This document shows positions 7,058-57,309 of a stretch of DNA of 64,000 nucleotides, in pieces. The notes beneath the pieces are model-generated. The model was given only the letters and a program-made list of their open reading frames with translations, did no database searches and had not been told where the DNA came from. Within the stretch, counting starts at the first letter, position 1; the number at the start of each line of letters is the position of its first letter. Location of the stretch: assembly GCF_964188315.1 (NCBI RefSeq), contig NC_135670.1, forward strand, positions 23,994,001 through 24,058,000. The letters are read 5' to 3'. The position numbers were made by a program, and so were the translations under genes. Source of the stretch: Podarcis muralis (Eukaryota).

Positions 7058-7184
7058 AAAACATCTGGAGGGCACCAGGATGCTGAAGACCCTTCTCTCT
7101 AAGGCTACCCAGCTTGATGTGTGTTGAAATAAAGCCAACTCCTTCCTGGATCTGTAACTCCCCATAGCCTCTCACTCAGCTCAC

Positions 7185-7356
7185 CTTGCGCAGAGAGCGC
7201 GAGCAGATGACGTAGTTGAGGAACTCCACGGTGAGGCGGCGGCACAGCTGGATCGTCTGAACGTGGCACTTGCCAGTACGCGGGAAGGTGGCGAAGAGGA
7301 AGCACATGGAAAGAGCGTCGTCAAGGTCCCGCAGGGCATCGATGAAGGTTGGGTAC
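7185..7356 (-). CDS. PES1: PES1 exon 5 ([57 protein letters not shown])
   Basis: AG acceptor, gtgagc donor, 172 nt. Confidence 0.97.
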
Positions 7357-7690
7357 CTGCAAGGGGGAGGTGAAGAACAAGACCATGTAACGCACACAGC
7401 CTTAATCATCCCAGAGTGCTTTATAAACAAACGGACTATAGTCCGCTTGCCCTGTCCCCATGGGATCGGATCCCCCTTCTGCTGGGGACGAAATTGAGGA
7501 TGCTGGATCAGAAGGGGAACTGCATGTAGGGCCAGCCCCAGTGGCACATCCACAGGATGAGTTCCTGGTACTGGTGCCTCTTCGGCCAGAGGGAACTGCA
7601 CTCCCATCCCCTGACCCTCCTGTGCCCAGTTACTTGGATCCCCATTGTGGTTCCTCTGCAAGGTTCTCCCTTGGGCCTCCCATCTCTTAC

Positions 7691-15235: not shown

Positions 15236-15374
15236 NNNNNNNNNNNNNNNNNNNNNNNNNNNNNNNNNNNNNNNNNNNNNNNNNNNNNNNNNNNNNNNNN
15301 NNNNNNNNNNNNNNNNNNNNNNNNNNNNNNNNNNNNNNNNNNNNNNNNNNNNNNNNNNNNNNNNNNNNNNNNNN
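15236..15374. other. Assembly gap (139 N) in TCN2 intron 1
   Basis: Run of N starting 8 nt after the exon 1 end. Confidence 0.99.
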
Positions 15375-36479: not shown

Positions 36480-36676
36480 TCCGAGGGCCTTCTGGTGGCT
36501 CCCTCCCTGCGAGAAGTGAGGTTGCAGGGAACCAGGCAGAGGGCCTTCTTGGTAGTGGCACCCACCCTGTGGAACGCCCTCCCATCAGATATCAAGGAAA
36601 TAAAAAACTATATGACATTTAGAAGACATCTGAAAGCAGCCCTGTATCGGGAAGCTTTAAATGTTTGATATTATTT

Positions 36677-36716
<40 letters not shown>

Positions 36717-36734
36717 TTATTATTATTATTATTA
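36480..36734 (+). mobile_element. L2 LINE 3' fragment with (TTTA)n tail
   Basis: Matches 34.49-34.68 kb. Confidence 0.82.
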
Positions 36735-37082
36735 AAGGTAAAGGGACCCCTGACCATTAGGTCCAGTCACGGACGACTCTGGGGTTGCGGCGCTCATCTC
36801 GCTTTATTGGCCGAGGGAGCCGGTGTACAGCTTCCGGGTCATGTGGCCAGCATGACTAAGCCGCTTCTGGCGAACCAGAGCAGCACACAGAACCACCGTT
36901 TACCTTCCCGCCAGAGCAGTACCTATTTATCTACTTGCACTGGCATGCTTTCGAACTGCTAGGTTGGCAGGAGCAGGGACCGAGCAACGGGAGCTCACCC
37001 CGTCACAGAGATTCGAACCGCCGACCTTCTGATCGGCAAGTCCTAGGCTCTGTGGTTTAACCCACAGCACCACCCGCGTCCC
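36735..37082 (-). mobile_element. Sauria SINE
   Basis: Full head, core and tail, flanked by (ATT)n. Confidence 0.88.
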
Positions 37083-37122
37083 TTATTATTATTATTAATA
37101 TATTTTATATCTCTCACCCCAG

Positions 37123-37544
37123 GTACCTTCCTGCAGGAGGAGCGCCTGGACTCGTTAACCTTGCTCTGCCTCACCTCCCTGCCCAGCTTCTACATCCTCT
37201 TTGCGGCCGCCCTGGTCCTTGAGGTGGGGCCCGCCTGGGACGGCACCCTGGCCTACGGAGGGGGTCTCTGGGCCTGTGTCCTGCTCAGCTGCCTGGGCTC
37301 GGTGCTGTACAACTTGGCCAGCTTCTACGTCATCTCGCTGACGTCGGCCCTCACCATCCACGTCCTGGGGAACTTCAACGTGGTGGGCAACCTCCTGCTC
37401 TCCCACTTCCTCTTTGGCAGCCGCCTGACGCTGCTCAGCTACGCGGGCATCGCCCTCACCCTCTCCGGGGTCTTCATGTACCATCACTGTGACTCCATCG
37501 CCTCCTGCTGGCGCTCCAGGGGTGGGCGGGGCAAAGAGGAGTAA
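37123..37544 (+). CDS. SLC35E4: SLC35E4 terminal coding exon ([15 protein letters not shown]...LYNLASF...[11 protein letters not shown]...GKEE*)
   Basis: ccccag acceptor, phase 1 matches; TAA stop. Confidence 0.95.
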
Positions 37545-40027
37545 GCGGAGAGAGGGAGGACGTGATTGGAGCTGTGACTGCCAAGCGCGGGAGCTGTAGG
37601 GCCAATGGGGTAGGGGGCCTGCCCTGCCAACCCCAGCCTGCTCTTGTCTAGCCCCCATCTGGTCCAGGAGGGTTGGCACTGGCTGCCCGCTTCCTGCTCC
37701 CTGGTCTCAGTGTCGCTCAGCCGGGAGGAGGACGGGGACAAAACTAGAATGAGTTGACTCAGCCTGCTCTCTGGCGCCACCTACTGTTGGGCTCCCTGCT
37801 TTCTGCCCTACCGGTGGGCACCGGCCGCCACGGGGAGTTAGGGTGACTCTGAATACCCGTTGTTGGGAATTGCAGGTGGGCAGAGTGTCGGTTTGCTCAG
37901 GTCCCGCTTGCAAGCTTCCAATTGGGGCATCTGGTTGGCCACTGTGAGAACATGATGCTGGACTAGATGGGCTTGATTCAGCAGAGTTGCTCTTATGTTC
38001 TTACACCACCACTGCAGGCGGTGGCACTGCCGGCCAGCTTCCTCCCCTCGGTGTTGCCCTTGCGGAACTGCAGAAAGGAGGACGGGGACAAAAGCTGCAG
38101 TGAGTTGGCTCTGCCTGTCGTTGGCTGTGGCGCCACCTACTGTTGGGCCTCCCTGCTTTCTGTCCTGCCAATCCCAATGGGTGCCAGCCACTACTGCCGA
38201 AGGTGTGCCTCTCCTCTCTGATGGATCATAGCATGCCTCTGGTACGTTGCGGGGGGGACAGTGGGCGCTCATGATCAGCAGATGCCAGAGTTGTGGGAAG
38301 GCTTATCCTCCTCCAAATAACTCAGCCCCACCTGACCCCTGAGCCATTTTACGCACTGGGCAAGAGCTACAGCAGATGGTTTTTAGAGGAAGCCAGGAGG
38401 CGCCACCTCTGCCCACCGAAGGATTTGACGGCAGGGATTAGATGCTGCGTATCTGAATTCTCACCTACATAGAATCTTTTTTTAAAAAAATATTTTTAAA
38501 ATCCCTGCCCCTAGAAAGCCAGCACCTTGGGAGAGAGAGGGTTCTCTTCTCTTTTTCTCCCTGATGTGCTAGATTTCTACATGCAGGTAGTCTCCCCAGC
38601 TCCTCTGAGGCAGATAATTCAAACATGCAGACTCTGGGGAAGAGAGAAGGGAAGAGCGGATCTGCCTCAGCAGAGCCCTCTGGCACCAGCCGCTACTTCT
38701 CATAGGGCTAAAAATTGGGGGAAACTAAGTGTTTCCTTCTTTTTAAAAAATGTTGAGACTTGAATGTGTGCTGGAGTGCACCTCTGATCTCCGCAAGCCG
38801 CTTGGCAGCCATGCCAATTCTCGTGCCAGTTCCTCTCCAACCCCTGCGAGGGCACTGTGGGATTGATGCCCGCAGAGGGAGGTGGCACAGAGTTCCTCCT
38901 TTCCTTGGGCAGGGCTCCCCACTTGGTACTAAAGTACTGAATGAGGAGCTCCCATATAGGAGGAACATGGAGATGAAAAGTGGGGTGTTCAGGGTCGTGT
39001 GTGTGTGTGTGTGTGTGTGTCTATTTCCGTTCTCTACTGCCATCTGGTGGGGTGGCGTATAGTGCAATTTTTATGGATGGATGTTTTATTTCTGTGCTGC
39101 CTGCTAGTGGATTAAGGGTGTGTGTTTGAGAGAGAGAGAGAGAGAGAGCGTGCATGCACATTTGCTTATGAGTAGACACCCATTAGTATTTCCTTATCCT
39201 CACTGGGCTACAACAAGGATCAGGAGATCTGCAGCCCTCCGGTTTCCGTTGGACTACAGCTCCCATCAGCCCCAGCCATCCTTGTCAATGGTTAGGGATG
39301 ATGGGAATTGTAGTCCCAGCATCTAGAGGACTATAGAGGTCCCTCCGTTCCTGGACTAGGTAACTCCTCAGGGTGCTCATTTGCTTTTGGTGGATGAAGA
39401 AAATCTTTACTGTTTGGCCTGTGTGGATATATTCGAAGGGCATTTTCCACCTGCCTACCAGATTCACTGGAAATCCTCTGATGAATGGGCACCCATTAAG
39501 CCCACCGGTAGTGGGTGAAAATGGTCAGTATTACTTTCCATGGGGTAAAATGCTTTTGGACACGTTTGAATTTGTTTACTTGTTGTTGCAGGGTGGGGAT
39601 GCACCCCGTTTTTGAAGGAGTCAAGGTCAATCTGTGCACGCAGATCAAATCACATGGCGCAGAATTGTCTTGGACCAATTTCTGCTTGCACATGGAAGTC
39701 TAGCATGTGAGGGGGGGAGAGTTCTAGCCCACCCAAACTCCCTGGGAGGCTAGCTTTCTACACGCAGGGAAGGGTTCGCTCTGCATACTTTGGTTTCGTT
39801 CCTGCGGTTCGACGTGGAACTCATGTGTCATGTGGTTCACCAGCAAGTGTTGATTGGCTTTCAGCCACCCCTATAGAAGTGGATTGTCATTTCCCCCTTA
39901 CGACACTGGCTGTCTTGCATTGCGTTTTACATGTTCTCCAAGCGGAGGCTAATGTACATATCTGTAATGTCTGCAAGATGTGCCAATGTCGGCTTGCTGT
40001 CATTTATAGCAAAGGGGGTTCGATAAT

Positions 40028-40030
<3 letters not shown>

Positions 40031-40064
<34 letters not shown>
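40031..40064. repeat. (GT)n microsatellite
   Basis: Read directly. Confidence 0.95.
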
Positions 40065-40066
<2 letters not shown>

Positions 40067-42092
40067 GGTCAGGCTTCTCTGACCTGGCGCTCTCCAGATG
40101 TTTTGTTCTTCCATTTCTACCAGACCCTACCAGCACAGCTGTTTTGAACTACAACTACAGCCATTCTGGCTGGGGGCTGCTGGGAGCTGTAGTCAAAACA
40201 TCTAAGAGGATGTTTTGGAGGAAGACTGGGTTCCGGATATCAAGGGCAGAGCCAACACATTCGTCCCTGGTGAAAAGGCTGTGGATACAGGCGTTTCCCT
40301 ACTCAAGTGTAAAGGGAAACATAAAGGCTGAACTGACCCCCACATAGCCTGCCAGAATCAATTTGGTGCAGCAGAAAGAACTGTTAGCAGATTAATAAGA
40401 TTGCCACTAGAAGGCTAGCCGTGAACACTCAGCAGCGCTGGGTGGGTGTGTGGCCAAATGTTTTTGCCAGTGTGTAAATTATTCAACTTTTTTTTATTTA
40501 CCATATGTGTGTGTCTTTTTTGGGAGGGGGGAAGGGTCGAATTAGGTTCAGCCCTAGCCACTTTTGTGCCTGAGATAAAAATTTGCAAGGCACCACCTTT
40601 GTCCACTGACATGAGGAAAAGTTAATATGACGATTCCTCTGGATATGTTCATATAGGGCTGAGTAAAAGTGTTTGAAAGTGCTGGTGGATCAGGTCTGTC
40701 TGTCCTACTAGTACCCAAAATATATCGGCTGGAACAGCCACTCCTAGTGTCTGCCCTCTGTCCACTGTCGGAGGCAGTATGCAGGGGAAGGTAGAAAAAA
40801 ACCACCACTGTTGAGGAATTATTGGGCTCCTCACAATACCATTTGTTTCATAAAACCAGATTTCTACGGTGTGAGGTGGGCCCTGTGTCATTGTTAACTG
40901 CTGCCTGAGTTGTCCATAAAGCACAAGGTATTTTGTGACAACCGGAGTGGTGTAGTTGTGAAAAGTGTCTAATCGGGACCCAGGGAAATTTGAGGTCCTT
41001 TCCTCACACAGCCTCAATACAGGCCAGTCACTCTTTGGACATAACTATCCTGGCTTCATACCCCATGGTTTTTGAATTCTGGCTAGTAACAGAAAGCCAC
41101 AGTTTCGTGTGTAATGGGAAACTGTGGTTTGGTTCACCAGTATTAACACAGGAAGCTGCCTCACACAGAATCAGAGACTGCCGGTCCACCTAGCTCAGAA
41201 TTGCCTACGCGGGCTATCAGCGACTCTCTAGAGTTTCAGATCTGAGACATCACCACCAGCCCTACCTGGAAATGCCAGGGATTGAACCCACGGCCTTCTG
41301 CTTGCAAGGCAGATGTTCTGCCACTGAGCTACGGCCCTTTCCTTGAAGCCACCAGGGGAGGGGAAGGAGTGTGGAGGCTCAGTTTCACAAACCATGGTTT
41401 CCAAAGCCAGGATCATTATATCCCGACTGACAGTGTCCGTCAGCTTAGCCTACCTCACAGGGTTGTGTGGTGAGCATATTGTGGTAGGCAGAGGACCTCA
41501 TATGCCACGCTGAGGTCCTCAGTGGGAGAGTGTTCACAAAATCACCACCGTAGTGGAGGCATCGCCATTTTTGCACGCACAGCTCTGGGGAATTGTATCT
41601 GTCCGGTTTCCTGTCTGGTGATGCCGTCGCCGCTCTCGCCCCCGACCCTTCCTTCCAGCAGTGAGCGATCCTTGCCGTATCACACCCAGCCTGAACCGTC
41701 CCAGTTAGGGACACGTGTCAAGTTCTCCTTTCGTGAAGCGTCCGGGTCATGCCATCCGATCAACGAGATAACGGGCGACTGAGGGAACCTCTGGCGCAAC
41801 CAGAGCACAAAGGAGGCCAAGCCGGCCTCTCCGGTTTCATTTGCCCTTCAAATAAAGCTCTATTTTTGTCTTACTTGAGCGCTTGTGCTTGTGTCCTTGA
41901 ACGACCCGAGGAAGGGAGGGAAACAGAGATGTGGGCGAGAGGGAGAGCCCACTCCTCCACCTCCAGCAGCTGTTTTGAGAAAAGAAATAGCTCTACATCA
42001 GGAAAGAGGATAATTCCCCAAGGTCTTTGCCCTTCCGTTGCCAGAGAAGGCGGGCGATGCAGGAAAATGCCTGTTCCTGCCCATCACGGATG

Positions 42093-42106
42093 GTTGCCAT
42101 GGCAGC
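42093..42106. promoter_or_regulatory. RFX X-box-like motif GTTGCCATGGCAGC (candidate promoter of the SYNRG-like gene)
   Basis: 13/14 match to GTTGCCATGGCAAC, next to a CpG-enriched patch at about 41570-42250. Confidence 0.5.
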
Positions 42107-42581
42107 CGGTCGCATGAAAGGCTTGCTTTTGCCAGCAGCAAAATCAAGGGGAGGTTTTTCATCCTACACCAGGGGGTGAAGCACCTTTTTCAGCCCAAGG
42201 GCCGTCTTCTCTTCCGGGCAACGGTGCCAGGGGTAGGCGGGACTGGAGGCAAAGATGCGAGGAGAAACAAATACGAGTTTTGACTTATATATACTAGGCA
42301 GGTTCCTACTCACGTTCAAACACAGCTCCATCTGCCGTTCAGGCAAGCAGGAGGCATTATCAGAGTTCAAGGGCACATTCCAGCCTGGCAAAAACACTCA
42401 AGGCCAGATAGGAAGCAAAGCTGGTGAAGGACAGGGCCTGGGGACAGGGAGTGTAGCCTGGAGAGCATTCCAAGAGCCAGATAGGCCTGGAGGGTCACAC
42501 TGACTCCCCCCCAGGCCTGAGGTTCCTTACCCCCCAATGTATGGAATAAATGGAGGCGGCAGATCAAGCCAAATCTTAGGC

Positions 42582-42835
42582 CAGGAGTCAGCAGACTTTT
42601 TCAGCAGGGGGCTGGTCCACTGTCCCTCAGACCTTGTGGGGGGCCAGACTATATTGGGGGGGGGGGGGTAAATGAACGAATTCCTATGCCCCACAAATAA
42701 CCCAGAGATGCATTTTAAATAAAAGCACACATTCTACTCATGTAAAAACACGCTGGTTCCTGGACCGTCTGCGGGCCAAATTTAGAAGGCGATTGGGTCG
42801 AATCCGGCCCCCTGGCCTTAGTTTGCCTACCAATG
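42582..42835. mobile_element. hAT MITE, same family, opposite orientation
   Basis: Reverse complement of 30027-30275; 7/8 TSD tcttagg(c/g). Confidence 0.8.
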
Positions 42836-43789
42836 TCTTAGGGCTTAGGCCATCTGTTCCTCCTCCTCAGATTTCCCTCAGCTGATCTGGCTAGTTTTCT
42901 TACTGAGCTCCTGAGGCAATAAGGAGCTGTCCACTGGCTATATACAGTACTGTATTTTTTGTTCTATAAGACTCACTTTTCCCCTCCTAAAAAGTAAGGG
43001 GAAATGTGTGTGCGTCTTACGGAGCGAATGCAGGCTGCGCAGCTATCCCAGAAGCCAGGAACAGCAAGAGGGATCGCTGCTTTCACTGTGAAGCGATCCC
43101 TCTTATTGTTCTGGCTTCTGAGATTCAGAATATTTTTTTGTGTGTTTTCCTCCTCCAAAAACTAGGTGCGTCTTATGGTCTGGTGTGAAAAATATGGCAT
43201 TTGAGCTGATGTAGGGGAGACCTGGAGCTCTATTGCTTTATCCCAGTTTAAAACAGATCTTTAATTGACCCTGGTTTCCACCCTTCAGTAAGGGGCCCAG
43301 GAAGGCAACGAAAGGGGAAATAATATTGCTTGGTGCTTATTCTCCTTTGCCTCTCGCCCTTCCCCCCTCTCCCAATTTGGATTAACAAGATTAACGTCTT
43401 GGCATGATCTCGCCCTCCCGGGAGCTGCACAGCATGGGGAACATTCTGTTCCTGGTTTGTCACCTTCTTTCTTCAGCAGGGCTCCTGTGCCTTTCAACGC
43501 TGGAACCCTAGCAGAAATGCAGGATCCTTATGGCAGGGAATGTCACACGGGACAGACGTCCGTCCTGCATGCGGCAGTCGAGCGCATCGGAGCTCTAAAA
43601 GGAAATGGAAAGTGGGCAAGAGATTTAGGGCAAGGGATCCCCAAAGCTGCCGCACACAGAGCAATGGGGGGCTTTGTAAACACTGTACATTTAAAGCACC
43701 ATGTTAAACTTTTGTGCAAACAAGTCAGGATGGAGGCTGAATAGAGGGGCCATTTAAAAGAGCTCCTAGTTTAGCACTCAGATCTCTGG

Positions 43790-44148
43790 ATGAATGTGGG
43801 TGGTGCTGTGGGTTAAACCACAGAGCCTAGGACTTGCTAATCAGAAGGTTGGCAGTTCAAATCCCCATGATGGGGTGAGCTCCTGTTGCTCGGTCCCTGC
43901 TCCTGCCAACCTAGCAGTTTGAAAGCACGTCAAAGTGCAAATAGATAAATAGGTACCACTCCGGCGGGAATGTAACCGGCGTTTCTGTGTGCTGCTCTGG
44001 TTCACCAGAAGCGACTTAGTCATGCTGGCCACATGACCTGGAAGCTGTACGCTGGCTCCCTCGGCCAATAAAGCGAGATGAGCGCCGCAACCCCAGAGTC
44101 GGCCACGACTGGACCTAATGGTCAGGGGTCCCTTTACCTTTACCTTTA
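43790..44148 (+). mobile_element. Sauria SINE
   Basis: Matches the other copies. Confidence 0.88.
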
Positions 44149-44192
44149 CTCTGGATGAACAGAGGGTGCTTTCAGACTGTTGCTGTTTTCAG

Positions 44193-44270
44193 GTGAGATT
44201 CAGTCACTTCCTGACAAAAAGATTAGACTTTTTGCAATAATGAAAGTTGTGGGGGAATGCACTGGAAACG
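44193..44270 (+). other. Tentative upstream exon of the SYNRG-like gene (GEIQSLPDKKIRLFAIMKVVGECTGN)
   Basis: ttttcag acceptor, ACG|gtgaga donor, open in only one frame; coding status unresolved. Confidence 0.35.
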
Positions 44271-45640
44271 GTGAGAAAACCCTTGTTTCGATGCCACATC
44301 ATCTAAGCTCCCCAACATACAAATTAGAATGGATCTCGTTAAACAGCCAACGTCGTGCGATCTCACTGCAAATAAATAGCCAACATCGTCTAACCTCCCT
44401 GAAAATGAATCAGGATTGATGCTCAAGAAACTGGTCACCTGGAGGCACTAACAATCCTGCTATGCTACACCAGGTTTTGTAGTTCTTATTTATTTTCCTA
44501 CACCCTGTACAAATCACCTTTAAGGACAAGGACTCTCAAGGTAGCACACAATTTTTAATAAATGATGTAATAAAAGCACGTTAAAAACTACTGAAAACAG
44601 CTGCAAAATAAAAGAGTTAAAAACCAGCAACAGATAAACGCATTCTTGGCTTTAGCTTTTCGGAACACGGTGGACATGGTGATATGAGGCTTTTCCTATT
44701 TTGGAAATATTTGTTCGCTGCTTATCTGTGTGTCTGAATTCTTACAGCTAGTTGGAATAGACATCTGGCTTTCTGTAAACACAGTGGAGCTCTTTGGTTT
44801 ATATCCTTGTGCCCAAGTTGCCACTTTTCCATCCTGGCTGTGCTCCTCCTCCTCTAACAGCAGACAGAGCAACACAAATAATTTAGGCAGGGGAGTTTTT
44901 TCCTGGCAGGGAGATAATGTGTTACCTGCTTAATTACATCATGGTTGCCATTGCTTAAGACAGAATGCTTTGTTGGCAACCCTACATTTATATAAACCAA
45001 ATATAATAAACATATTGAAGCAGTTCATATAAAAAGCAGTAACATAAGCATGCCTATATTATAGTTCTTCAAAGAGAAACATTAACAGTGCAATCCTAAC
45101 CTAATGTCTACTCAAAAGTAAGTCCTATTGAATCCAGAGAGCTTACTTCCGGTCAAGCAGGGTAGAGAATGCAGCCTTAAACACTACACTGTGTTTTAAA
45201 GTGTTCCAGTTATTCAACAGACATTTAAAGCACATGATTTCCCCCGACAGAATCCTGCGAACTTTAGTTTCCTCGCAGAGCTAGAGTTTCCAACACTTTG
45301 AACAAACGACAGTTCCCAGAATTGTTTGAGAGAAGTCTTCTGCTTTAAATTTATGGTGTGGATCTGTCCTTAATTTATTGAGAGGAATGAATTTATTGAG
45401 TTGTGGCAAACCTGGCGCCTTGTGAACTCTCACTCTGCAATGCGCCTGAGAGCCGCAGGAGATTACACTGAGCTCAGGTGGGAAAACTGGCCTGCTCAGA
45501 ATCCAGAGTTTGTCAGCTGACTCTGGAGTAGCACAAAGCAAACTTCCTGTAGACAGTAAAGAATCAGCCAGGTTCCTGTTCAGTACTTTTCCTTTGGAGA
45601 TAGGAATAAAGTCATTTGCTTGCCCACATATCTCATCCAG

Positions 45641-45687
45641 AAAACACCTTTGAATTCCAGCTGCAGAGGACTTACCTGTCTCTCCAG
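45641..45687 (+). other. Tentative upstream exon of the SYNRG-like gene (47 nt)
   Basis: catccag acceptor, CAG|gtaggt donor; frame ambiguous. Confidence 0.45.
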
Positions 45688-46807
45688 GTAGGTCAAGGGC
45701 TTCTCTCCTACATTACAGGAGTTTAAAGAAGCTGTGGATTTTGTTTCGAGGTGGACTGACAGGTGTGTGTGTGTGTGTGTGTTGCCGGAGAGAGAAATTC
45801 AGAGCAATAAGAATGTGTAGTGTGCTCAAAACCCTTGAAGCCATGCTTAATTGTTTGGTTTGTTTTTTAAAAAGCAGTAAGTGCTGCATTCTGGCATCCA
45901 AGAAATCTATCCCCTTTGGGTGTGGAGGAATTACATCAGCCTTCCCCAACCTGGTGCTCTCCAGATGGTTTGGACTGCAGTGCCCACCAGCCCTCGGGCA
46001 GGGATGATGGGAACGACAGGCCAAAACATCTGGAAACTGCCAGGTTGAGCGCCGGCTGCATTAAACACTCAGATGTGAAGTTAGCAGCCAGGCTGTTTAG
46101 AAGCGAGGGGAAAGCACACCTTTCAGCTGTCTGTCTGCTGCAAACAGCGGGAATTAGTGGCTGTTTTTATCTCCACACTCCTGTGTTTCCTTGAACGCTT
46201 AACAAACCTGCTGGGTAAGAAAAAAACTTTCGTGGACCACTGCCTGCTTTGTCAAGATGCAGTCTTAAAGGTGCCAGTAGACTCTTTTGGGTTTTCTTTT
46301 CACTGCAGAAAAACCAGATCATTCTGTTCTTCTGTGTACATAGCCTTTCATTAAAGTCCTGGCCCATCTAGCTTAGTATTGTCTACACTGACTGGCAGCA
46401 GCAACTCTCCAGAGTTTCAGACAGGGGACATTCCCTGCCCTACCTAGGATCTTCTGCATGCAAAGCAGATGCTCTACCATTCAGCTACCATCCTTCCCCT
46501 AAAAATGAATTAAGATCCTAGTCCTTATGGTTTTAAAAGTGGCAGAGCGTGCAGGGCAGATGCTCTACCACTGAGCTACAACTCATACTCCTCCAGTGTC
46601 TTCAACAGATGCACGGCACCCAGAAATATAGCTGGCAAAGCTTTCCCTGGTATGGTGATAAAGAAATGGGGAAAGATTCAGCAGCTACACTTATTTTATG
46701 TTAATCTGCCCATGGCCAGAGGCAGAGGAAGAGGGGAAATGGTTGGTGAAACCCCGCCACCACTTACAGTTTACATCACTCTTAACTTCTTCCTCTTTCC
46801 TGTCAAG

Positions 46808-46862
46808 GCTGATGAATTCTGAGGCTGCCCATCTGATGAGATGCTTGCAGCAGATCCATAAG
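46808..46862 (+). CDS. Synergin gamma C-terminal-like protein, exon A (LMNSEAAHLMRCLQQIHK); candidate ATG at 46812
   Basis: Polypyrimidine tract plus AG, AAG|gtaagg donor; aligns to the recalled SYNRG WQRCL..AL.VI helix. Confidence 0.75.
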
Positions 46863-47018
46863 GTAAGGCTATTGGTGGCTATTAGCCACAGTGTTCGCAT
46901 AACTATAATTAAGGGACCCTTCTGAATTTCCTAGTACGCTACCGTCCCAGGTATGGTGACTGATCTGCCACTACAAGCAGAGGCATATCTTCTCCCCCAC
47001 CCTGTGGAAATAAGTTAG

Positions 47019-47370
47019 GTAAAGGTAAAGGGACCCCTGACCATTAGGTCCAGTCGTGGCCGACTCTGGGGTTGCAGCACTCATCTCGCTTTATTGGCCG
47101 AGGGAGCCGGCGTACAGCTTCCGGGTCATGTGGCCACCATGACTAAGCTGCTTCTGGCGAACCAGAGCAGCGCACGGAAATGCCTTTTACCTTCCTGCTG
47201 GAGCGGTACCTATTTATCTACTTGCACTTTGACGTGCTTTCGAACTGCTAGGTTGGCAAGAGCAGGGACCGAGGAACGGGAGCTCACCCATCACGGGGAT
47301 TCAAATCGCCAACCTTCTGATTGGCAGGTTCTAGGCTCCGTGGTTTAACCCACAGTGCCACCCGCATCCC
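47019..47370 (-). mobile_element. Sauria SINE
   Basis: Matches the other copies. Confidence 0.88.
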
Positions 47371-47649
47371 TGGAAGAAAGTTGGTGCCCTCCAACTGCTT
47401 CGGGCAACTATTTATTCAATTGATTAACTGCTTTCTGCATAAAGAGCCTCTTTAGAACACAAGGCATAACGTCAGATGAAAACACCAGTACATTACAATA
47501 AAATCCATAGAATAACCCTCAAAGAGACCCAGTTAAACAACAGCAAAAGCCTATAATCAATAAACAGCACCATTGTCATCTGTGTAGACTGGGGCTGATG
47601 GAAGTTGTAGTCCAAAACAGCGGGGGGGGGACACAGCTGGAGGTATGGG

Positions 47650-48025
47650 ATGTGGGTAGCGCTGTGGAGTAAACTACTGAGCCTCTTGAGCTTGCCGATA
47701 GGAAGGTCGGCGGTTCAAATCCCCATGGCAGGGTGAGCTCCCATCGCTCTATCCCAACTCCTGCCAACCTAGCAGTTCGAAAGCACACCAGTGCAAGTAG
47801 ATAAATAGGTACCACTGTGGCAGGAAGGTAAACAGCGTTTCCGTGCGCTCTGGTTTCCATCACGGTGTTCCGTTGTGCCAGAAGCGGTTTAGTCCTGCTG
47901 CCCACATGACCCAAAAAGCTGTCTGTGGACAAACGCCGGCTCCCTCAGCCTGAAGGCGAGATGAGCGCCGCAACCCCATAGTCGCCTTTGACTGGACTTA
48001 ACCGTCCAGGGGTCCTTTACCTTTT
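47650..48025 (+). mobile_element. Sauria SINE (variant subfamily with ctgtggacaaac insert)
   Basis: Matches the other copies; longer internal segment. Confidence 0.85.
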
Positions 48026-48802
48026 AGCCTGGTGTGGCTTATATGGGCAGTTTTGAGCCATTGTTCTCTCCTATTCTTACAAGTTAAACCTATGTCCTGT
48101 TTTGCATTCCTTGTTCCTGTCCTTTGTCACTTTCTCCAGTCCATCAGTCTTCTGGAACAAAAAAAACCCTTTCAAATGCTGATTGCAGGATTATTATTTT
48201 TTACTGCCTGGTTGCGTGTTTGGCATCTTCCCCCCTCTGCTGGTTGAACTTAGTCATTGCACCGGCATAAGTGGGTCAGCCCTTTGATTCTTTTCAATTC
48301 TCTTGGGGACTCAGCGCCCTTCAAAGAAGTGTGCTTTATGTGTTGCATAACTTTGGTTTTTGCTCACAGGTTCTGGTTTGAAAAGTGTATTGTTTTTCCT
48401 TTTCTGTGGCAAGCGTCAAGTCTGGAGGGAGAGAAGCCACTCATCATCTTATATAGGAACCAACAGATTGGAGAAATAGTAATTTTGGGTTTGCTTGAAG
48501 CCCTAAGAGAGGGTTTTTTTAAAGTCTCTCTCAAATCTCTGTTTAATTCCTGCACATTCAACAGATGCAGCCAGGACAAAACTGCTTTTCCAACTCTTCT
48601 TTGGCTAAATATTTGTTCTTCCCAAAACCAGTTTCTGAATGATGGGCTGGACCAGGCCCTGAATGTGGCCCTGAAGTCCTGTTGTGTTTTTTTTTGAAAT
48701 GTTTAATCTTTTGTTGTTGTTGTTAACTTTGTGTTAAATATGTATTCTGTAGTTGACCACCTTTGTAATGTTTTATTCTGAAATCTTTAGGATAATATTT
48801 TA

Positions 48803-49106
48803 AAAAGGTAAAGGGACCACTGACCATTAGGTCCAGTCGTGGCTGACTCTGGTCCCTGCTCCTGCCAACCTAGAAGTTCGAAAGCACATCAAAGTGCAAG
48901 TAGATAAATAGGTACCGTTCCGGCGGGAAGGTAAACGGCGTTTCCGTGTGCTGCTCTGGTTCACCAGAAGCGGCTTAGTCATGCTGCCCACATGACCCGG
49001 AAGCTGTACGTCGGCTCCCTCGGCCAATAAAGTGAGATGAGCGCCGCAACCCCAGAGTTGGTCACGACTGGACCTAATGGTCAGGGGTAACTTTACCTTT
49101 ACCTTA
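48803..49106. mobile_element. Rearranged Sauria SINE with 3' tails at both ends (foldback)
   Basis: About 45 nt of reverse-complement tail followed by a plus-strand body and tail. Confidence 0.8.
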
Positions 49107-49289
49107 CAATGTCTGCATGGTTCAAAAGCTCACTTTTGTCGCATGGCCTTAGGAGTGTTGCTGTTTGGATTGCTGTGACGACTGCCTGCATTTCAGAGTT
49201 TGCTGTTGCTAGTGATCCAGCTCTGGTGTGCAGAGATGAACATACCAAGGACTTTGGTTGCAGTATCTTTCTCCCTCTTTCCCCTGCAG

Positions 49290-49386
49290 GTATTCAGCAA
49301 TGCCAATGAAATCCTCGCAGGCATCAGTCAGCCATCTGTGTGCAGCGAGGTGCTGCTGTCTGCACCAGGGACTGCATATATCCTGG
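49290..49386 (+). CDS. SYNRG-like exon B (VFSNANEILAGISQPSVCSEVLLSAPGTAYIL)
   Basis: cccctgcag acceptor, G|gtatgg donor; resembles recalled SYNRG ANDTLNGISSSSVCTEVIQSAQGMEYLL. Confidence 0.88.
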
Positions 49387-49934
49387 GTATGGTATGGATT
49401 TGTGCCTATAAAAAAAGGCCCAGTGTCACAACCTCTACTGCCTATTGGTCTCCCTTTTCCCGAACTTGGGGGGCTGTTCAGTGAAGCTGACTATTAGAAT
49501 ATTTGAGACAGACAAAAGGCAGTAGTTCTTCACACAATTATGGAACTCGCTGCCACGGGAGGCAGTGGGGGCCGAGAAACTTGGATAGCTTTAAAAAAAA
49601 TTAGACAAATTCATGGAAAAGGCTAACAAATGGCTATGCTCTGCCTTCATGGTTGGAGACGAATAACAGCTGCTGGAAAGCTCAGGAGCAGTGATGTAGC
49701 GTGGGTTGCCAAGGCCCGGGGCCACGTGGAAGGAAGGAAGGGAAATGGATGGAAAAGGATGGAATACGCATGCAAATTCAACTGCATTCGCACCACCCAG
49801 GAGATTGCAGCTGTAGAAATAAGAAGAGTCATTTTCATTGACCGGAGAGGTCACTTCCTGGTTCACACGGAGAAGCTATTTTCATTAGACCCCAGCAAGG
49901 GAAGTACACAGCTGTAAGAAGAAGAAAAAAGGGG

Positions 49935-50308
49935 TGTGGGTGGCCTTGTGGTCTAAGCCACTGAGACTCTTGAGCTTGCTGATCAGAAGGTTGGTGGTTT
50001 GAATCCCTGCGACGGAGTGAGCTCCCGTTGCTCTGTCCCAGCTCCTGCCAACCTAGCAGTTTGAAAGCACACCAGTGCAAGTAGATAAATAGGTACCGCT
50101 GCGGCGGGAAGGTAAACGGCATTTCCGTGCGCTCTGGTTTATGTCACAGTATCCATTGTGCCAGAAGTGGTTTAGTCATGCTGGCCACGTGACCTGGAAA
50201 GCTGTCTGCAGACAAACACAGGCTCTCTAGGCCTGAAAGCAAGCTGAGCGCCGCAACCTCATAGTCGCCTTTGACTGGACTTAACCGTCCAGGGGTCCTT
50301 TACCTTTC
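49935..50308 (+). mobile_element. Sauria SINE (variant subfamily)
   Basis: Matches the other copies. Confidence 0.85.
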
Positions 50309-50738
50309 TGCACAGCTGTATTGAGACAGCACCAGGTGTTGAAATTTTGCGCCCCTAACAAATTTGCAACCCTCCCCAATGCTACACCACTGTGCAGGAG
50401 GAGAGAGGGTTCTTGTGCTTGGGTCCTGCTTGTGGGCATCCCATAATGAGCATTTGGTTGTCCACTGTGAGAGCAGGATGCTAGCCTAGATGAGCCACTG
50501 GCAGCCTAAATTTGCCAATAGGCAAGCTGGATCTCACCCACAAAACAGTGGCCTTTGGGAAGTGGCTGTTGCAGCAAGGCTTGCAATATGTGACTTGAAC
50601 CCTCAGAGGTGATATCCTCCCTCGCTAAATCTTTTCTAAGTAACTCCACTCCACCGGTTTATGCTTATGCACGTGCAAATCTATATCCCAACAGCTGCAG
50701 AGGACGACTTGCCTTGCTGTTTCTTTTTTTGCATCCAG

Positions 50739-50899
50739 GGTTGTCAGAAGTGTACCGGGTCTCCAAGCGCTTGGAAGAAGGGATGAAGGCTAGGAGAGCG
50801 GAGAGCGAAGCCCTGTTGCATTGCCTGCGCAAGGTGGATCTGGCCTGGAACAACCTCCTGTCCTTTCTCGCTTTTGGCCATTCTGTATTCCAGATGCTG
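50739..50899 (+). CDS. SYNRG-like exon C (GLSEVYRVSKRLEEGMKARRAESEALLHCLRKVDLAWNNLLSFLAFGHSVFQML)
   Basis: AG acceptor, gtaagg donor, phase 1 to 0; resembles recalled GVVEVYRVTKRVELGIK...IDKVWNNLIGF. Confidence 0.9.
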
Positions 50900-50912
50900 G
50901 TAAGGACGTCTT

Positions 50913-51263
50913 GGGATGCGGGTGGCGCTGTGGGTTAAACCACTGAGCCTAGGACTTGCCGATCAGAAGTTTGGCGGTTCGAATCCCTGCCACAGGGTGA
51001 GCTCCCGTTGCTCGCTCCCTGCTCCTGCCAACCTAGCAGTTCAAAAGCACATCAAAGTGCAAGTAGATAAATAGGTACCGCTCTGGTGGGAAGGTAAACG
51101 GCGTTTACGTGCGCTGCTCTGGTTCGCCAGAAGTGGCTTAGTCATGCTGGCCACATGACCCAGAAGTTGTACACCGGCTCCCTCGGCCAATAAAGCAAGA
51201 TGGGCGCCGCAACTCCAGAGTCAGCCACGACTGGACCTAATGGTCAGGGGTCCCTTTGCCTTT
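50913..51263 (+). mobile_element. Sauria SINE
   Basis: Starts about 14 nt after the SYNRG-like exon C donor. Confidence 0.88.
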
Positions 51264-51699
51264 AAGGACTTCTTAGTGGATACATGAAGAACACCTGGAG
51301 GCAAGGGCTAGCACTGACCCCACCTCTCCCTCTGCTTGGCTTATTTGGTGGGTTTCTCTCTGATGACAGCTTGTTTACATACCCTCAAAAAATTCTCCAA
51401 TGAAAACAGGGACGTCCTAAGGAACAGCAGGACATTCTGGGATCCAATCAGAAACTGGGATGGCTTCTGTAAACCCGGGACTGTCAAAACTGGGACACTT
51501 GGAGGGTCTGTATTTATTTGACCTGCTGAGGCTTGGTCAATGGCACTCTGGGAAATAGTGTCATCATTCCGGCAGTGAAATAAGCATCACCTTATTTATT
51601 TGTCCCTTAGGAAGATAGAATGCTGTCAAACAGAACTGGGTCATCTAGCTCAGGAATGTCCACACCATCGGATCATTCTGTTCTTCTGGGTACATGGCC

Positions 51700-52090
51700 T
51701 TTCATTAAAATACTGGTCCGTCTAGCTCAGTATTGTCCACACTGACTGGCAGCGGCTCTCCAGGATTTCAGGCAAGGGGACATTCCCAATCCAACCTGGA
51801 AATTCTGAGATTGAACCCAGGACCTTCTGCATGCAAAGCAGGTGTCCTGCCACTGAGCTACAGCCATTCACTGTGCTGAATCAGACTCTTGGTCCATTGA
51901 GCTTAGTGCTGCCTACACTGACTGGCAGCAGCTCTCTGGGGTTTCAGGCAGGGAGTCTTTCCCAGCCCTACCTGGAGATGGTGGGGATTGAACCCGGGAC
52001 CTTCTGCATGCAAAGCAAGTGCTCAACCACTGAGCTACAACCTTCTTCACCATCTCTCTCAGCATTGCTTACTCTGACTGGCAGTGTGCC
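51700..52090 (-). mobile_element. Tandem tRNA-derived SINE copies (further copies near 5600, 10680, 11270, 12040, 19545, 29530, 41150, 46360, 59540)
   Basis: A-box/B-box-like head GCTCAGTGGTAGAGCA...GGTTCAATCCC without a complete cloverleaf. Confidence 0.7.
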
Positions 52091-52207
52091 TCTTCAGAGT
52101 TCTGATCCTTGACCAAGTGCCTGGGTTGCTGATTTGGCCTTTGGGGGAGAGAAAGCCAGGTTCTGACACTTTGGGTGCCCCCCCCCCCATGTTGACTTTG
52201 CTTACAG

Positions 52208-52321
52208 AATGTTAACCTGCTGGAGCCGCCTGGTGAAAGTGACTCTCGCTTGTCAGCTTCTGACCTAGCACCCGAACCAGTCTGTGGGGTTTGCCTAACT
52301 GAGGTGAAGCGGGAGCCCCAG
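52208..52321 (+). CDS. SYNRG-like exon D (NVNLLEPPGESDSRLSASDLAPEPVCGVCLTEVKREPQ)
   Basis: cttacag acceptor, CAG|gtgagc donor, 114 nt phase 0; CGVCL motif. Confidence 0.88.
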
Positions 52322-52657
52322 GTGAGCTTATTCATTTTTAAAATTTGTTTCACACATGGAATGGGGAATCTGTGGTCCTCTAGATGCTGGTGTTAAAAGT
52401 GCCAAACTAGGGACCCAGGAGAGCAGGGTTTGAATCCCCACTCGGCCATGAAGCTTGGGCCAGTTGCTGCCTTTCAGCCAAACTACCTCACAGGGTTGTT
52501 GTGGGGATTAAGTGAGGATAACCTTGTACTGTACACTGCCTTGAGCTCCTTAGGAAAAACGGTTGGGATGTGATTATAATAAGCATGTCTATTCTTATCA
52601 CCGTCACGACTACTACTATTTGGTAGTAGTATTTTAGTTGCTTGTTATCCAAATGTA

Positions 52658-53029
52658 AGGGACGCGGGAGGCACTGTGGTGTAAACCACTGAGCCGCTTG
52701 GGCTCACCGATCAGAAGGTTGGCGGTTTGAGTCCCCACAATGGAGTGAGCTCCCGCTGCTCTGTCCCAGCTCCTGCCAACCTAGCAGTTCAAAAGCACAC
52801 CAGTGCAAGTAGATAAATAGGTACCACTGCAGTGGGAAGGTAAACGGTGTTTCCGTGCACTGCTCTGGTTTCCGTCACGGTGTTCCGTCGTGCCATAAGC
52901 AGTTTAGTCATGCTGGCCATATGACCCTTAAAGCTGTCTGTGGACAAACACCGGCTCCCTCGGCCTGAAAGCGAGATGAGCGCCACAACCCCATAGTCGC
53001 CTTTGACCATCCAGGGATCCTTTACCTTT
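52658..53029 (+). mobile_element. Sauria SINE (variant subfamily)
   Basis: Matches the other copies. Confidence 0.85.
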
Positions 53030-53485
53030 ATCCAGATTTTAAAATGACCATAATAGTTGTCGTTAAATTTATTGCCTTCCCTTCACTGGCAGGTCCCAGG
53101 ATAGGTTACATCAGCTTAAAATTCAGAATTAAAAACTGTTGAAACATTACAGGTGGGTCCTGAAAACTCACATCTCAGGTATTCAAGGCTTGTTTACAGA
53201 AGAACATTTTCAGCGTTTATTGAAAGCTGGAGAATGAAGGTGCCAGGCACACTTCTGTGGGGTACAAATGCATTGCAGCATGAAAACAGAAGAACACCCT
53301 TAACAGCCACAATAAGCTTTGGCAGCACATCTTAGTCTATGAGATGCCATGGGGAAAACACAATTGTCTAACTGGCATTGAAAAGATCTTAATGAAGGTT
53401 TCAGGTGGATTACACTGGGCAGAGTATCCTGCAGACAGGGAGCCATGACCGAAAAGGCCTTATTTATTTTTCTTTGCCTTCTCAG

Positions 53486-53596
53486 GTGAGTTCTGGAAAC
53501 TCAGATCCTATTATGTATGAAGGTAACTGTTATCATGCCAGCTGTGCCAATTTCTGGCTGAACTGTGTGGAGGCCACTTTGCCAGGAGGGACGTGA
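53486..53596 (+). CDS. SYNRG-like terminal exon E (VSSGNSDPIMYEGNCYHASCANFWLNCVEATLPGGT*)
   Basis: ttctcag acceptor; YHASCANFW.NCVE matches the recalled SYNRG C-terminus; TGA stop. Confidence 0.9.
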   Translation: MSSGNSDPIMYEGNCYHASCANFWLNCVEATLPGGT

Positions 53597-56656: not shown

Positions 56657-57223
56657 TCACAAGGCTATCATGACCCTGACTTCGTTTTCGTAGAGGTCAG
56701 GAATCACCCCCAGCGGGGACTGGACCATCTTGACGCTGGTTTTCCCAAAGAGTTTCTGCTCGTACTGGATGAGCTGCTGCCAAAAGCCGTTGTTGGGCCG
56801 GACGATGGGCCGGCAGCACTTGACCCAGGCGTGGGCGTTTGCCAGAGACATTGAGTGGTACTTCATCAGGTAGGCGATGCACAGGGCGGCGGATCGGCTG
56901 ATGCCCGCAGCGCAGTGCACTAGCGTCCGGCCTTGGTTTGATTCCACGGCGCGGATCTTATCGGCTACGGGGTCGAAGAAGTCCAAAAGGCGGGACGAGG
57001 GGCAGTCTGTTATGGGGACGTGGATGTAGTAAATGTCTGGGAAGTAAGTGTTGACCACCTCCACCGAAACGTTGATAACTGTGGTGATGTGGTTGGTGTA
57101 GAGGAAGAGTTTGTTGTTGGCGGCCTCGCCATTACTGAGGAACAGGCTGTTTGTGATCCGGGAAAGGCCGTAGACAGACGGGTGCCTGAGTATGATAGGG
57201 ATGGTTCCAAACGCTGCATTCAT
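56657..57223 (-). CDS. DUSP18: Dual specificity phosphatase 18, single coding exon, 188 aa
   Basis: HCAAGISRS catalytic loop; PSV.GLS.IT.SL, NNKL and IPDLYE.EVR.MI.L are DUSP18-type rather than DUSP14-type; ATG at 57223 (the track's 57226 start is TTG). Confidence 0.95.
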   Translation of the reverse strand: MNAAFGTIPIILRHPSVYGLSRITNSLFLSNGEAANNKLFLYTNHITTVINVSVEVVNTYFPDIYYIHVPITDCPSSRLLDFFDPVADKIRAVESNQGRTLVHCAAGISRSAALCIAYLMKYHSMSLANAHAWVKCCRPIVRPNNGFWQQLIQYEQKLFGKTSVKMVQSPLGVIPDLYENEVRVMIAL

Positions 57224-57309
57224 CAAGGCGAACTTTAGACATCAGCTACGACAGGAAGCATCATTCTTGCTCGCTCTGCTTTAGGGAGGCAAATGAGGCT
57301 TCCAGTTAG

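Follow-up and report, generated by a model that had tools for sequence, protein, structure and literature searches.

A small stand-alone gene for the synergin gamma C-terminal domain between SLC35E4 and DUSP18 in Podarcis muralis

Results

A five-exon gene between SLC35E4 and DUSP18

The window analysed here is a stretch of 64,000 nucleotides (nt) of the Podarcis muralis genome (contig NC_135670.1, positions 23,994,001 to 24,058,000 of the forward strand), to which all coordinates refer unless another contig is named. Between an SLC35E4-like gene and DUSP18, it contains a small plus-strand gene at 46808..53596. Its five coding exons specify a protein of 177 amino acids (aa), which is nothing but the C-terminal domain of synergin gamma (SYNRG_C, Pfam PF25999).

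The five exons form a genuine protein-coding gene, which is listed in RefSeq. The spliced frame runs from the ATG at 46812 to the TGA at 53594-53596 and comprises 177 codons without an internal stop. All four introns are GT...AG, the exon phases are compatible and an AG acceptor stands directly before 46808. A splice mapper that accepts only exact protein matches with GT/GC-AG introns independently recovered the identical five coding segments (51, 97, 161, 114 and 111 nt), as they had been drawn in a first-pass annotation of this DNA. The spliced product (P0149) is identical at 177/177 residues to XP_028566600.2, synergin gamma-like [Podarcis muralis], and differs at 5-10 residues from the proteins of P. 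raffonei, P. lilfordi, Lacerta agilis and Zootoca vivipara.

Coding exon 1 (46808..46862, on the plus strand like the four that follow) encodes residues 1-17 and the start of helix 1. Its 51 nt of coding sequence are also found in lacertids, Rhineura, Gekko, Xenopus and sterlet. The exon is preceded by an acceptor with a strong polypyrimidine tract (46788..46807, +; tcttcctctttcctgtcaag, continued across the junction by GCTGATG), and the Lacerta X1 model uses the same acceptor, 4 nt 5' of its ATG. Since the ATG comes only 4 nt after this acceptor site (46808), coding exon 1 is an internal exon, and at least one non-coding or variable 5' exon must therefore lie upstream. Exon 2 (49290..49386; 97 nt, ending in phase 1) provides residues 18-50 (ANEIL..SQPSVCSEVLLS..GTAYILG), and exon 3 (50739..50899; 161 nt) provides residues 50-103 (EVYRVSKR...WNNLLSFL), with an invariant tyrosine, Y55, at 50753-50755. 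Residues 104-141 are encoded by exon 4 (52208..52321; 114 nt, phase 0-0) and consist of a low-confidence linker and a C-x2-C knuckle, whose cysteines C129 and C132 lie at 52283-52285 and 52292-52294. Exon 5 (53486..53596) encodes residues 142-177 and the TGA. A beta-hairpin and a helix are predicted here, and the motif YHASCANFWLNCVE holds H158 (53534-53536), C161 (53543-53545), N163 and W165. This exon is the portion most conserved with respect to invertebrate SYNRG. Repeats of 220-380 nt that resemble short interspersed elements (SINEs) occur in both orientations in every intron and touch no exon, in agreement with the earlier remark that the frame has stayed intact in spite of intronic insertions.

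Longer N-terminal isoforms have been modelled in Lacerta (192 aa), Rhineura (202 and 287 aa) and Sceloporus (238 aa). Their extensions are variable upstream exons that have no sequence in common. In Lacerta agilis isoform X1, the upstream exon contributes MLKKLVTWRHQQSR. Splice mapping and alignment against this isoform locate a relic of this alternative first exon in P. muralis at 44419..44462 (+), which has an in-frame TAA at 44449-44451 and has lost its GT donor. Because the N-terminal extension is not conserved, the 177-aa protein is the conserved product.

The protein is a SYNRG_C domain

Exon 3 alone (53 aa) retrieved 33 relatives of 75-311 aa in a full phmmer scan of 1.84 billion proteins (best E 1e-17, well above chance), and their clusters are named 'synergin gamma-like' or 'Synergin gamma C-terminal domain-containing protein'. 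A nine-member profile found 113 relatives of 103-339 aa, all but one with a precomputed Pfam assignment to PF25999. The 90%-identity cluster that contains the window protein (representative P0073) carries PF25999.1. Our local Pfam scan gave no match for single exons or for whole family members, the window protein included. The local copy seems to be without PF25999, so that the blank scan is no evidence against membership. A search of the ESM Atlas with exon 3 returned chance-level matches only.

Structure comparison leads to the same segment of SYNRG. When the model of the window protein was compared by Foldseek with AlphaFold Swiss-Prot, so that both sides are predicted structures, model residues 5-175 aligned with SYNRG residues 1120-1299 in mouse, 1143-1322 in rat and 1128-1307 in human (template-modelling (TM) score by query 0.73-0.77, identity 38-39%, E 3e-10 to 8e-10). 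The next match was C. elegans R10E11.6 (E 4e-5), and the matches of the model among AFDB clusters are mostly SYNRG C-termini across metazoa. The kinship with the synergin gamma C-terminus, which the first-pass annotation had put forward, is thereby confirmed. Weak AFDB matches (E 0.003-0.03) are also C-termini of long proteins, namely Dictyostelium Q55C41 and others without a name; the SYNRG_C fold may be older than animals.

Seven residues (C129, C132, H158, C161, Y55, N163 and W165) never vary among 60 sequences, which cover clam and other invertebrate-type domains as well, and the SYNRGs of insects, spider, tick and clam likewise contain the motifs C-x2-C...H-x2-C and CANFW. The window protein resembles SYNRG (AP1GBP1) over its whole length, which aligns with SYNRG residues ~1128-1307 and keeps the conserved motifs and the candidate zinc ligands. 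Unlike SYNRG, it is a small protein, about 1,100 residues shorter, and lacks the EH domain, the gamma-ear-binding region and the long disordered N-terminal part. In synergin, residues 295-377 form the EH domain, and gamma-adaptin (gamma-ear) is bound by residues 518-786 (PMC2169493); the copied part of SYNRG is the portion without an assigned function. The missing parts do not lie elsewhere in the window. A tblastn search of both window strands with seven SYNRGs of invertebrate type, full-length or partial, of which four possess an EH domain, matched exons 2, 3 and 5 only. DFxDF and NPF motifs are absent from every plus-strand frame of 37545-46807, and the 177 aa contain no DFxDF-type motif. 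The earlier statement that neither an EH domain nor gamma-ear motifs lie upstream thus holds.

A predicted helical bundle with a candidate zinc finger

The AlphaFold2 model of the protein, built from the 60-sequence alignment, has a predicted local distance difference test score (pLDDT) of 80.7 and a predicted TM score (pTM) of 0.78. It shows helices at residues 3-27, 32-40, 42-67, 73-95 and 99-108, followed by a low-confidence linker (109-123). The finger consists of the C-x2-C at 129-132, two short strands (150-152, 155-157) and a helix (159-169) that begins at H158-x2-C161. The predicted fold is an antiparallel three-helix bundle (~residues 3-95) with a linker and a small finger. A sequence search of the PDB gave no SYNRG_C structure, and Foldseek against the PDB gave nothing significant. 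Kinship of residues 1-100 with spectrin repeats, syntaxin Habc and GAT domains (VIA-align Z 8-10) was considered and rejected, as the scores fall below helical-bundle noise and describe a generic three-helix bundle.

We infer that C129, C132, H158 and C161 may form one structural zinc site of the treble-clef kind. Like treble-clef fingers (RING, PHD and the halves of LIM), the predicted finger has a C-x2-C knuckle, a beta-hairpin and an H-x2-C at the start of a helix. Matches to RING and LIM are weak, local and not significant (EL5 RING-H2, the best RING sequence match, E 0.16; Foldseek E about 1 or above). A RING-type zinc finger was ruled out, since only four ligand positions are conserved, which make up one site and not an eight-ligand cross-brace.

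For 13 species, the annotation includes isoforms that lack precisely exon 4 (five squamates, six frog entries, one shark and one ray). One of them, P0114 of Podarcis lilfordi, is 96% identical to the window protein. With its 114 nt and phase 0-0, exon 4 can be skipped in frame, and skipping removes the C-x2-C. In a model of the 139-aa P. lilfordi form, made from a shallower alignment of 13 rows, the bundle is kept (pLDDT 81-93, most of residues 41-90), with values of 42-61 for the finger. The recurrence of these annotations suggests that exon-4 skipping produces a conserved alternative isoform without the zinc knuckle.

Distribution and selection

Relatives are found in many squamates, two side-necked turtles, about 30 frogs, the axolotl and two caecilians, and also in lungfish, coelacanth, sturgeons and paddlefish, and about 15 cartilaginous fishes (sharks, rays, chimaera). 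Orthologues measure 140-260 aa. Among annotated proteins, there were no relatives from mammals, birds, crocodilians, hidden-necked turtles or teleosts. Contig L011 (SRR22107230_1709) carries at 662-1210 an intron-less, GC-rich 182-aa copy (GC at third codon positions 0.77) that is 72% identical to the Emydura protein. It may stem from a turtle, crocodilian or bird, and would then alter the list of losses. An upstream open reading frame (ORF) on this transcript-like contig was considered as SLC35E4 and rejected, as it is not SLC35E4. Sturgeons have the small gene twice, on different chromosomes (P0108 and P0159 in Acipenser ruthenus, P0157 and P0158 in Huso huso), which fits the retention of both after the sturgeons' own genome duplication.

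Coding exons 1-3 are 51, 97 and 161 nt long in 8/8 species mapped, from sterlet to lizard, and exon 4 ranges from 102 to 114 nt in the mapped species, always a multiple of three. Among six squamates, the Nei-Gojobori ratio of nonsynonymous to synonymous substitution rates (dN/dS) is 0.14-0.29, and bootstrapping places its upper limits at 0.22-0.65. The purifying selection that had previously been argued from the intact frame is thus also seen in the substitution rates. The gene is an old vertebrate duplicate under purifying selection. An elephant-shark cDNA-derived entry (AFK11164.1) and intron-less ORFs on read-archive contigs of about 1 kb support spliced expression of its relatives.

Relationship to SYNRG

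The window protein is 45-52% identical to the small proteins of sharks, rays and chimaera, compared with 38-39% to mammalian SYNRG and 36% to the clam SYNRG C-terminus. The exon structure of true SYNRG could be followed on read-archive contigs from a vertebrate (L001-L003), which end about 0.7 kb after the exon-3 equivalent, short of the SYNRG C-x2-C and the last exons. The exon-2 equivalent (L002 9828-9924) has 97 nt and runs from a phase 0 start to a phase 1 end, as in the small gene. The exon-3 equivalent starts at the same codon position, and the preceding exon ends at the same alignment point. Since intron positions and phases match those of SYNRG, the copy was made from genomic DNA and not by retroposition, and the small gene is the equivalent of SYNRG's last five coding exons only. 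In a 176-aa read-archive ORF (P0032), the true-SYNRG equivalents of exons 2 and 3 are fused without an intron. It is 66% identical to the L002 SYNRG fragment and is probably a frameshifted SYNRG transcript from a distant vertebrate.

In a maximum-likelihood tree, the small genes of 15 species, from chimaera to lizard, form one clade (support 100/99). This clade joins two vertebrate SYNRG fragments (99/95), apart from 14 invertebrate-type SYNRG sequences, which are named arthropods and unidentified eukaryotes from metagenome and read-archive assemblies. The tree gives good support to a duplication that would have taken place after the invertebrate split and before the radiation of jawed vertebrates, with the exact topology less secure. 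Together with locus and identities, the separate clade bears out the earlier proposal of a paralogue and not an orthologue.

The neighbourhood of the gene

The upstream neighbour is an SLC35E4-like gene (32889..37544, +) with coding exons in the ORFs 32889-33686 and 37161-37544, recognised by Pfam TPT and EamA. Downstream and convergent lies DUSP18 (56657..57226, -), a single coding exon of 189 aa with a Pfam DSPc match of 2e-34. The small gene is therefore situated in the SLC35E4-DUSP18 interval, where the first-pass annotation had placed it. Best among the solved relatives of the DUSP18 ORF are human DUSP18 (8e-84), DUSP21 and DUSP14 (2e-59), the next following at 7e-26, and in this comparison DUSP14 and DUSP18 are each other's closest paralogues outside DUSP21. 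Farther upstream, an ORF at 7179-7661 (-) matches Pescadillo_N (4e-21) and is taken as a PES1 exon. The gene order of the window matches that of human 22q12, PES1 ... SLC35E4, DUSP18.

The arrangement recurs in distant relatives. In sterlet (L005), a TPT gene (SLC35E4), the small gene and a DSPc gene (DUSP18) have the order and strands of the window. In Xenopus tropicalis, a DSPc gene and then an OSBP2-like gene come after the small gene, and in Lacerta, Zootoca, Rhineura, P. raffonei and Gekko, a minus-strand DSPc gene lies just 3' of it. In isoform X2 of Zootoca vivipara, the last exon is replaced by one beyond DUSP18 (L007 22187-22246); the transcript would therefore cross the whole of DUSP18 in antisense. 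The small protein of the electric ray Narcine bancroftii (P0104, P0160) is filed at NCBI as SLC35E4 isoforms X6 and X4, which hints at read-through or shared-promoter transcripts between SLC35E4 and the small gene. ARAGORN calls a tRNA-Ala(TGC) at 41268-41339 (-), adjoining a CpG-rich patch at 41401-42000. This could be a real tRNA gene, the head of a SINE or the small gene's promoter region. At 15236-15374, 139 consecutive N mark a gap or a masked stretch.

Discussion

The gene at 46808..53596 is best explained as a stand-alone SYNRG_C paralogue, an old vertebrate duplicate of the end of SYNRG that is under purifying selection. We put the probability of this reading at about 85%. The gene had been described to us as unnamed. 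It has indeed neither a gene symbol nor a study, but the same exons are held by RefSeq as 'synergin gamma-like', and UniProt and Pfam PF25999 cover the family. XP_028566600.2 is this very gene, and XP_032991957.1 (Lacerta agilis), AFK11164.1 (Callorhinchus milii) and others are orthologous. These models are alike in their five coding exons and neighbours, and the entries are automatic annotations without a study. The gene is thus an automatically named, uncharacterised member of a known domain family that is already in RefSeq and UniProt. A full-text literature search returned no paper on the synergin gamma-like gene or on SYNRG_C/PF25999. In the searchable papers we met no account of its evolutionary history, with an old duplicate of the last five exons, conserved linkage to DUSP18 and apparent losses, or of the recurrent skipping of exon 4.

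Could the small gene be the lizard's only synergin gene, a SYNRG orthologue cut down to its C-terminus? NCBI names the small proteins of Anolis carolinensis and Xenopus laevis 'synergin gamma isoform X2', and we retrieved no full-length squamate SYNRG. Yet the locus is SLC35E4-DUSP18 and not DUSP14-SYNRG-DDX52, the protein is closer to the small genes of sharks than to mammalian SYNRG, and the SYNRG fragments fall outside the small-gene clade. We therefore consider this scarcely credible. Nearly as improbable is a decaying relic, that is, a truncated duplicate that is transcribed and functionless in lizards. Large vertebrate groups have apparently lost the gene and its introns have collected numerous SINE-like insertions, which would suit such a relic. 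This reading is contradicted by the frame, which is intact in all eight mapped species with exons 1-3 identical in length, by dN/dS values whose upper bounds stay below 1, and by candidate zinc ligands that are invariant from chimaera to lizard.

A somewhat better case, though still an improbable one, can be made for a longer coding unit of which the five exons are only the 3' part, either through SLC35E4 read-through isoforms or through missed N-terminal coding exons. The first coding exon begins at an acceptor, extended N-terminal isoforms are modelled in three squamate genera (Lacerta, Rhineura and Sceloporus), and the electric-ray copy is filed under 'solute carrier family 35 member E4 isoform X6/X4'. 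These ray isoforms (191 and 216 aa), however, match the small-gene profile with E 2e-67 over 94% of the profile and gave no transporter match. The extensions share no sequence between species, and the one from Lacerta is broken in P. muralis by a stop and the loss of its donor. From chimaera to lizard, a methionine at the equivalent position opens the shortest models, and no similarity to the SYNRG N-terminus occurs within the 64-kb window.

Several points weigh against the paralogue reading or parts of it. The presence of a full-length SYNRG in P. muralis is not directly demonstrated. Profile searches aimed at vertebrate SYNRG, which were limited by length window and word sampling, returned only SYNRGs of arthropods and unidentified eukaryotes. 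The tree has 94 columns and contains just two SYNRG fragments, one of them from an unidentified vertebrate, which form no resolved clade. The losses are deduced from absence among annotated proteins of 102-325 aa that share 5-residue words, and not from genome searches. For P. muralis itself, no read-archive contig with the exact protein appeared, as the look-up listed the genome only. The predicted zinc site, finally, is deduced from residue conservation and secondary structure and not from model coordinates.

With the paralogue reading in place, the question arises how the duplicate came about. The human SYNRG locus has the order DUSP14, SYNRG, DDX52, HNF1B (PMC13692584). As SYNRG and the small gene on the one hand, and DUSP14 and DUSP18 on the other, make up two linked paralogous pairs, their origin in a duplication of a block or of the whole genome would fit. 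The evidence for such an ohnologue consists of the 94-column tree, the two SYNRG fragments and the DUSP14/DUSP18 pair, and is without lamprey or hagfish. We regard it as likely that the copy predates the split between cartilaginous and bony vertebrates, that it arose in the block duplication that also gave rise to DUSP14 and DUSP18, and that mammals, archosaurs, most turtles and teleosts lost it afterwards.

What the protein does can be addressed only tentatively. In the mechanism that we would suggest as one possibility, the four invariant ligands would hold one structural zinc, and the small protein would bind the partner of the synergin C-terminal domain, most plausibly the aftiphilin/HEATR5 scaffold. 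Without an EH domain and a gamma-ear region, it would uncouple its host complex from AP-1/GGA ears and NPF cargo adaptors, and would thus act as an alternative or competing subunit. The first-pass annotation had likewise proposed that it could compete with or modulate the aftiphilin/HEATR5B/synergin complex, possibly in testis or ciliated cells. Skipping of exon 4 would give a bundle-only, finger-less form. Binding of synergin's C-terminal partner is the most economical mechanism, because this domain is the only one left and the residues invariant throughout the family have been kept. We know of no partner of the SYNRG_C domain, which speaks against this proposal, as does an AlphaFold2 screen in which no confident interface between HEATR5A/B and synergin emerged (PMC10798858). 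The same screen did give a confident HEATR5 interface for aftiphilin and also for the small, aftiphilin-like CLBA1, which is predicted to bind HEATR5A and HEATR5B (PMC10798858). CLBA1 offers an analogy, not a homology: it is a short protein that stands alone and resembles just one module of a large HEATR5/AP-1 cofactor, namely aftiphilin's HEATR5-binding region. Its sequence is unrelated to that of the window protein and, unlike the small gene, it is present in humans.

An equally tentative alternative grants the descent from SYNRG and assumes a new job, that of a small zinc-finger adaptor which has partners other than aftiphilin/HEATR5 and does not compete with synergin. This would suit the long stem branch of the small-gene clade (0.58 changes per column), the mere 38-39% identity to SYNRG and the lack of a predicted HEATR5-synergin interface (PMC10798858), and repeated loss in large vertebrate groups fits a dispensable or specialised role. 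On the other side, the residues that are invariant in SYNRG are all kept (EVYRV, WNNL, C-x2-C, YHxxCANFWLNCV), as would be expected of a retained ancestral binding surface. Going beyond competition at the synergin partner, one may speculate that an ohnologue of the 2R duplications has survived in slowly evolving lineages as a regulated, AP-1-uncoupled HEATR5 subunit, perhaps with HEATR5A and CLBA1 in a 'mini' complex, in which an exon-4 switch toggles the zinc finger. We think this rather unlikely.

As genome annotation, the finding is ordinary. Its interest lies in the domain. Invertebrates and vertebrates alike have conserved the C-terminal domain of SYNRG, although neither a function nor a partner has been assigned to it. 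Recent work cited in PMC13692584 has proposed that biallelic variants of SYNRG can cause hereditary spastic paraplegia. A natural 177-aa protein that contains this domain only, that is under selection from sharks to lizards and that is present in Xenopus provides a convenient handle for pull-downs, structures and knockouts. If the 'mini' complex were real, the small gene would supply a natural minimal construct for finding the partner of the synergin C-terminal domain.

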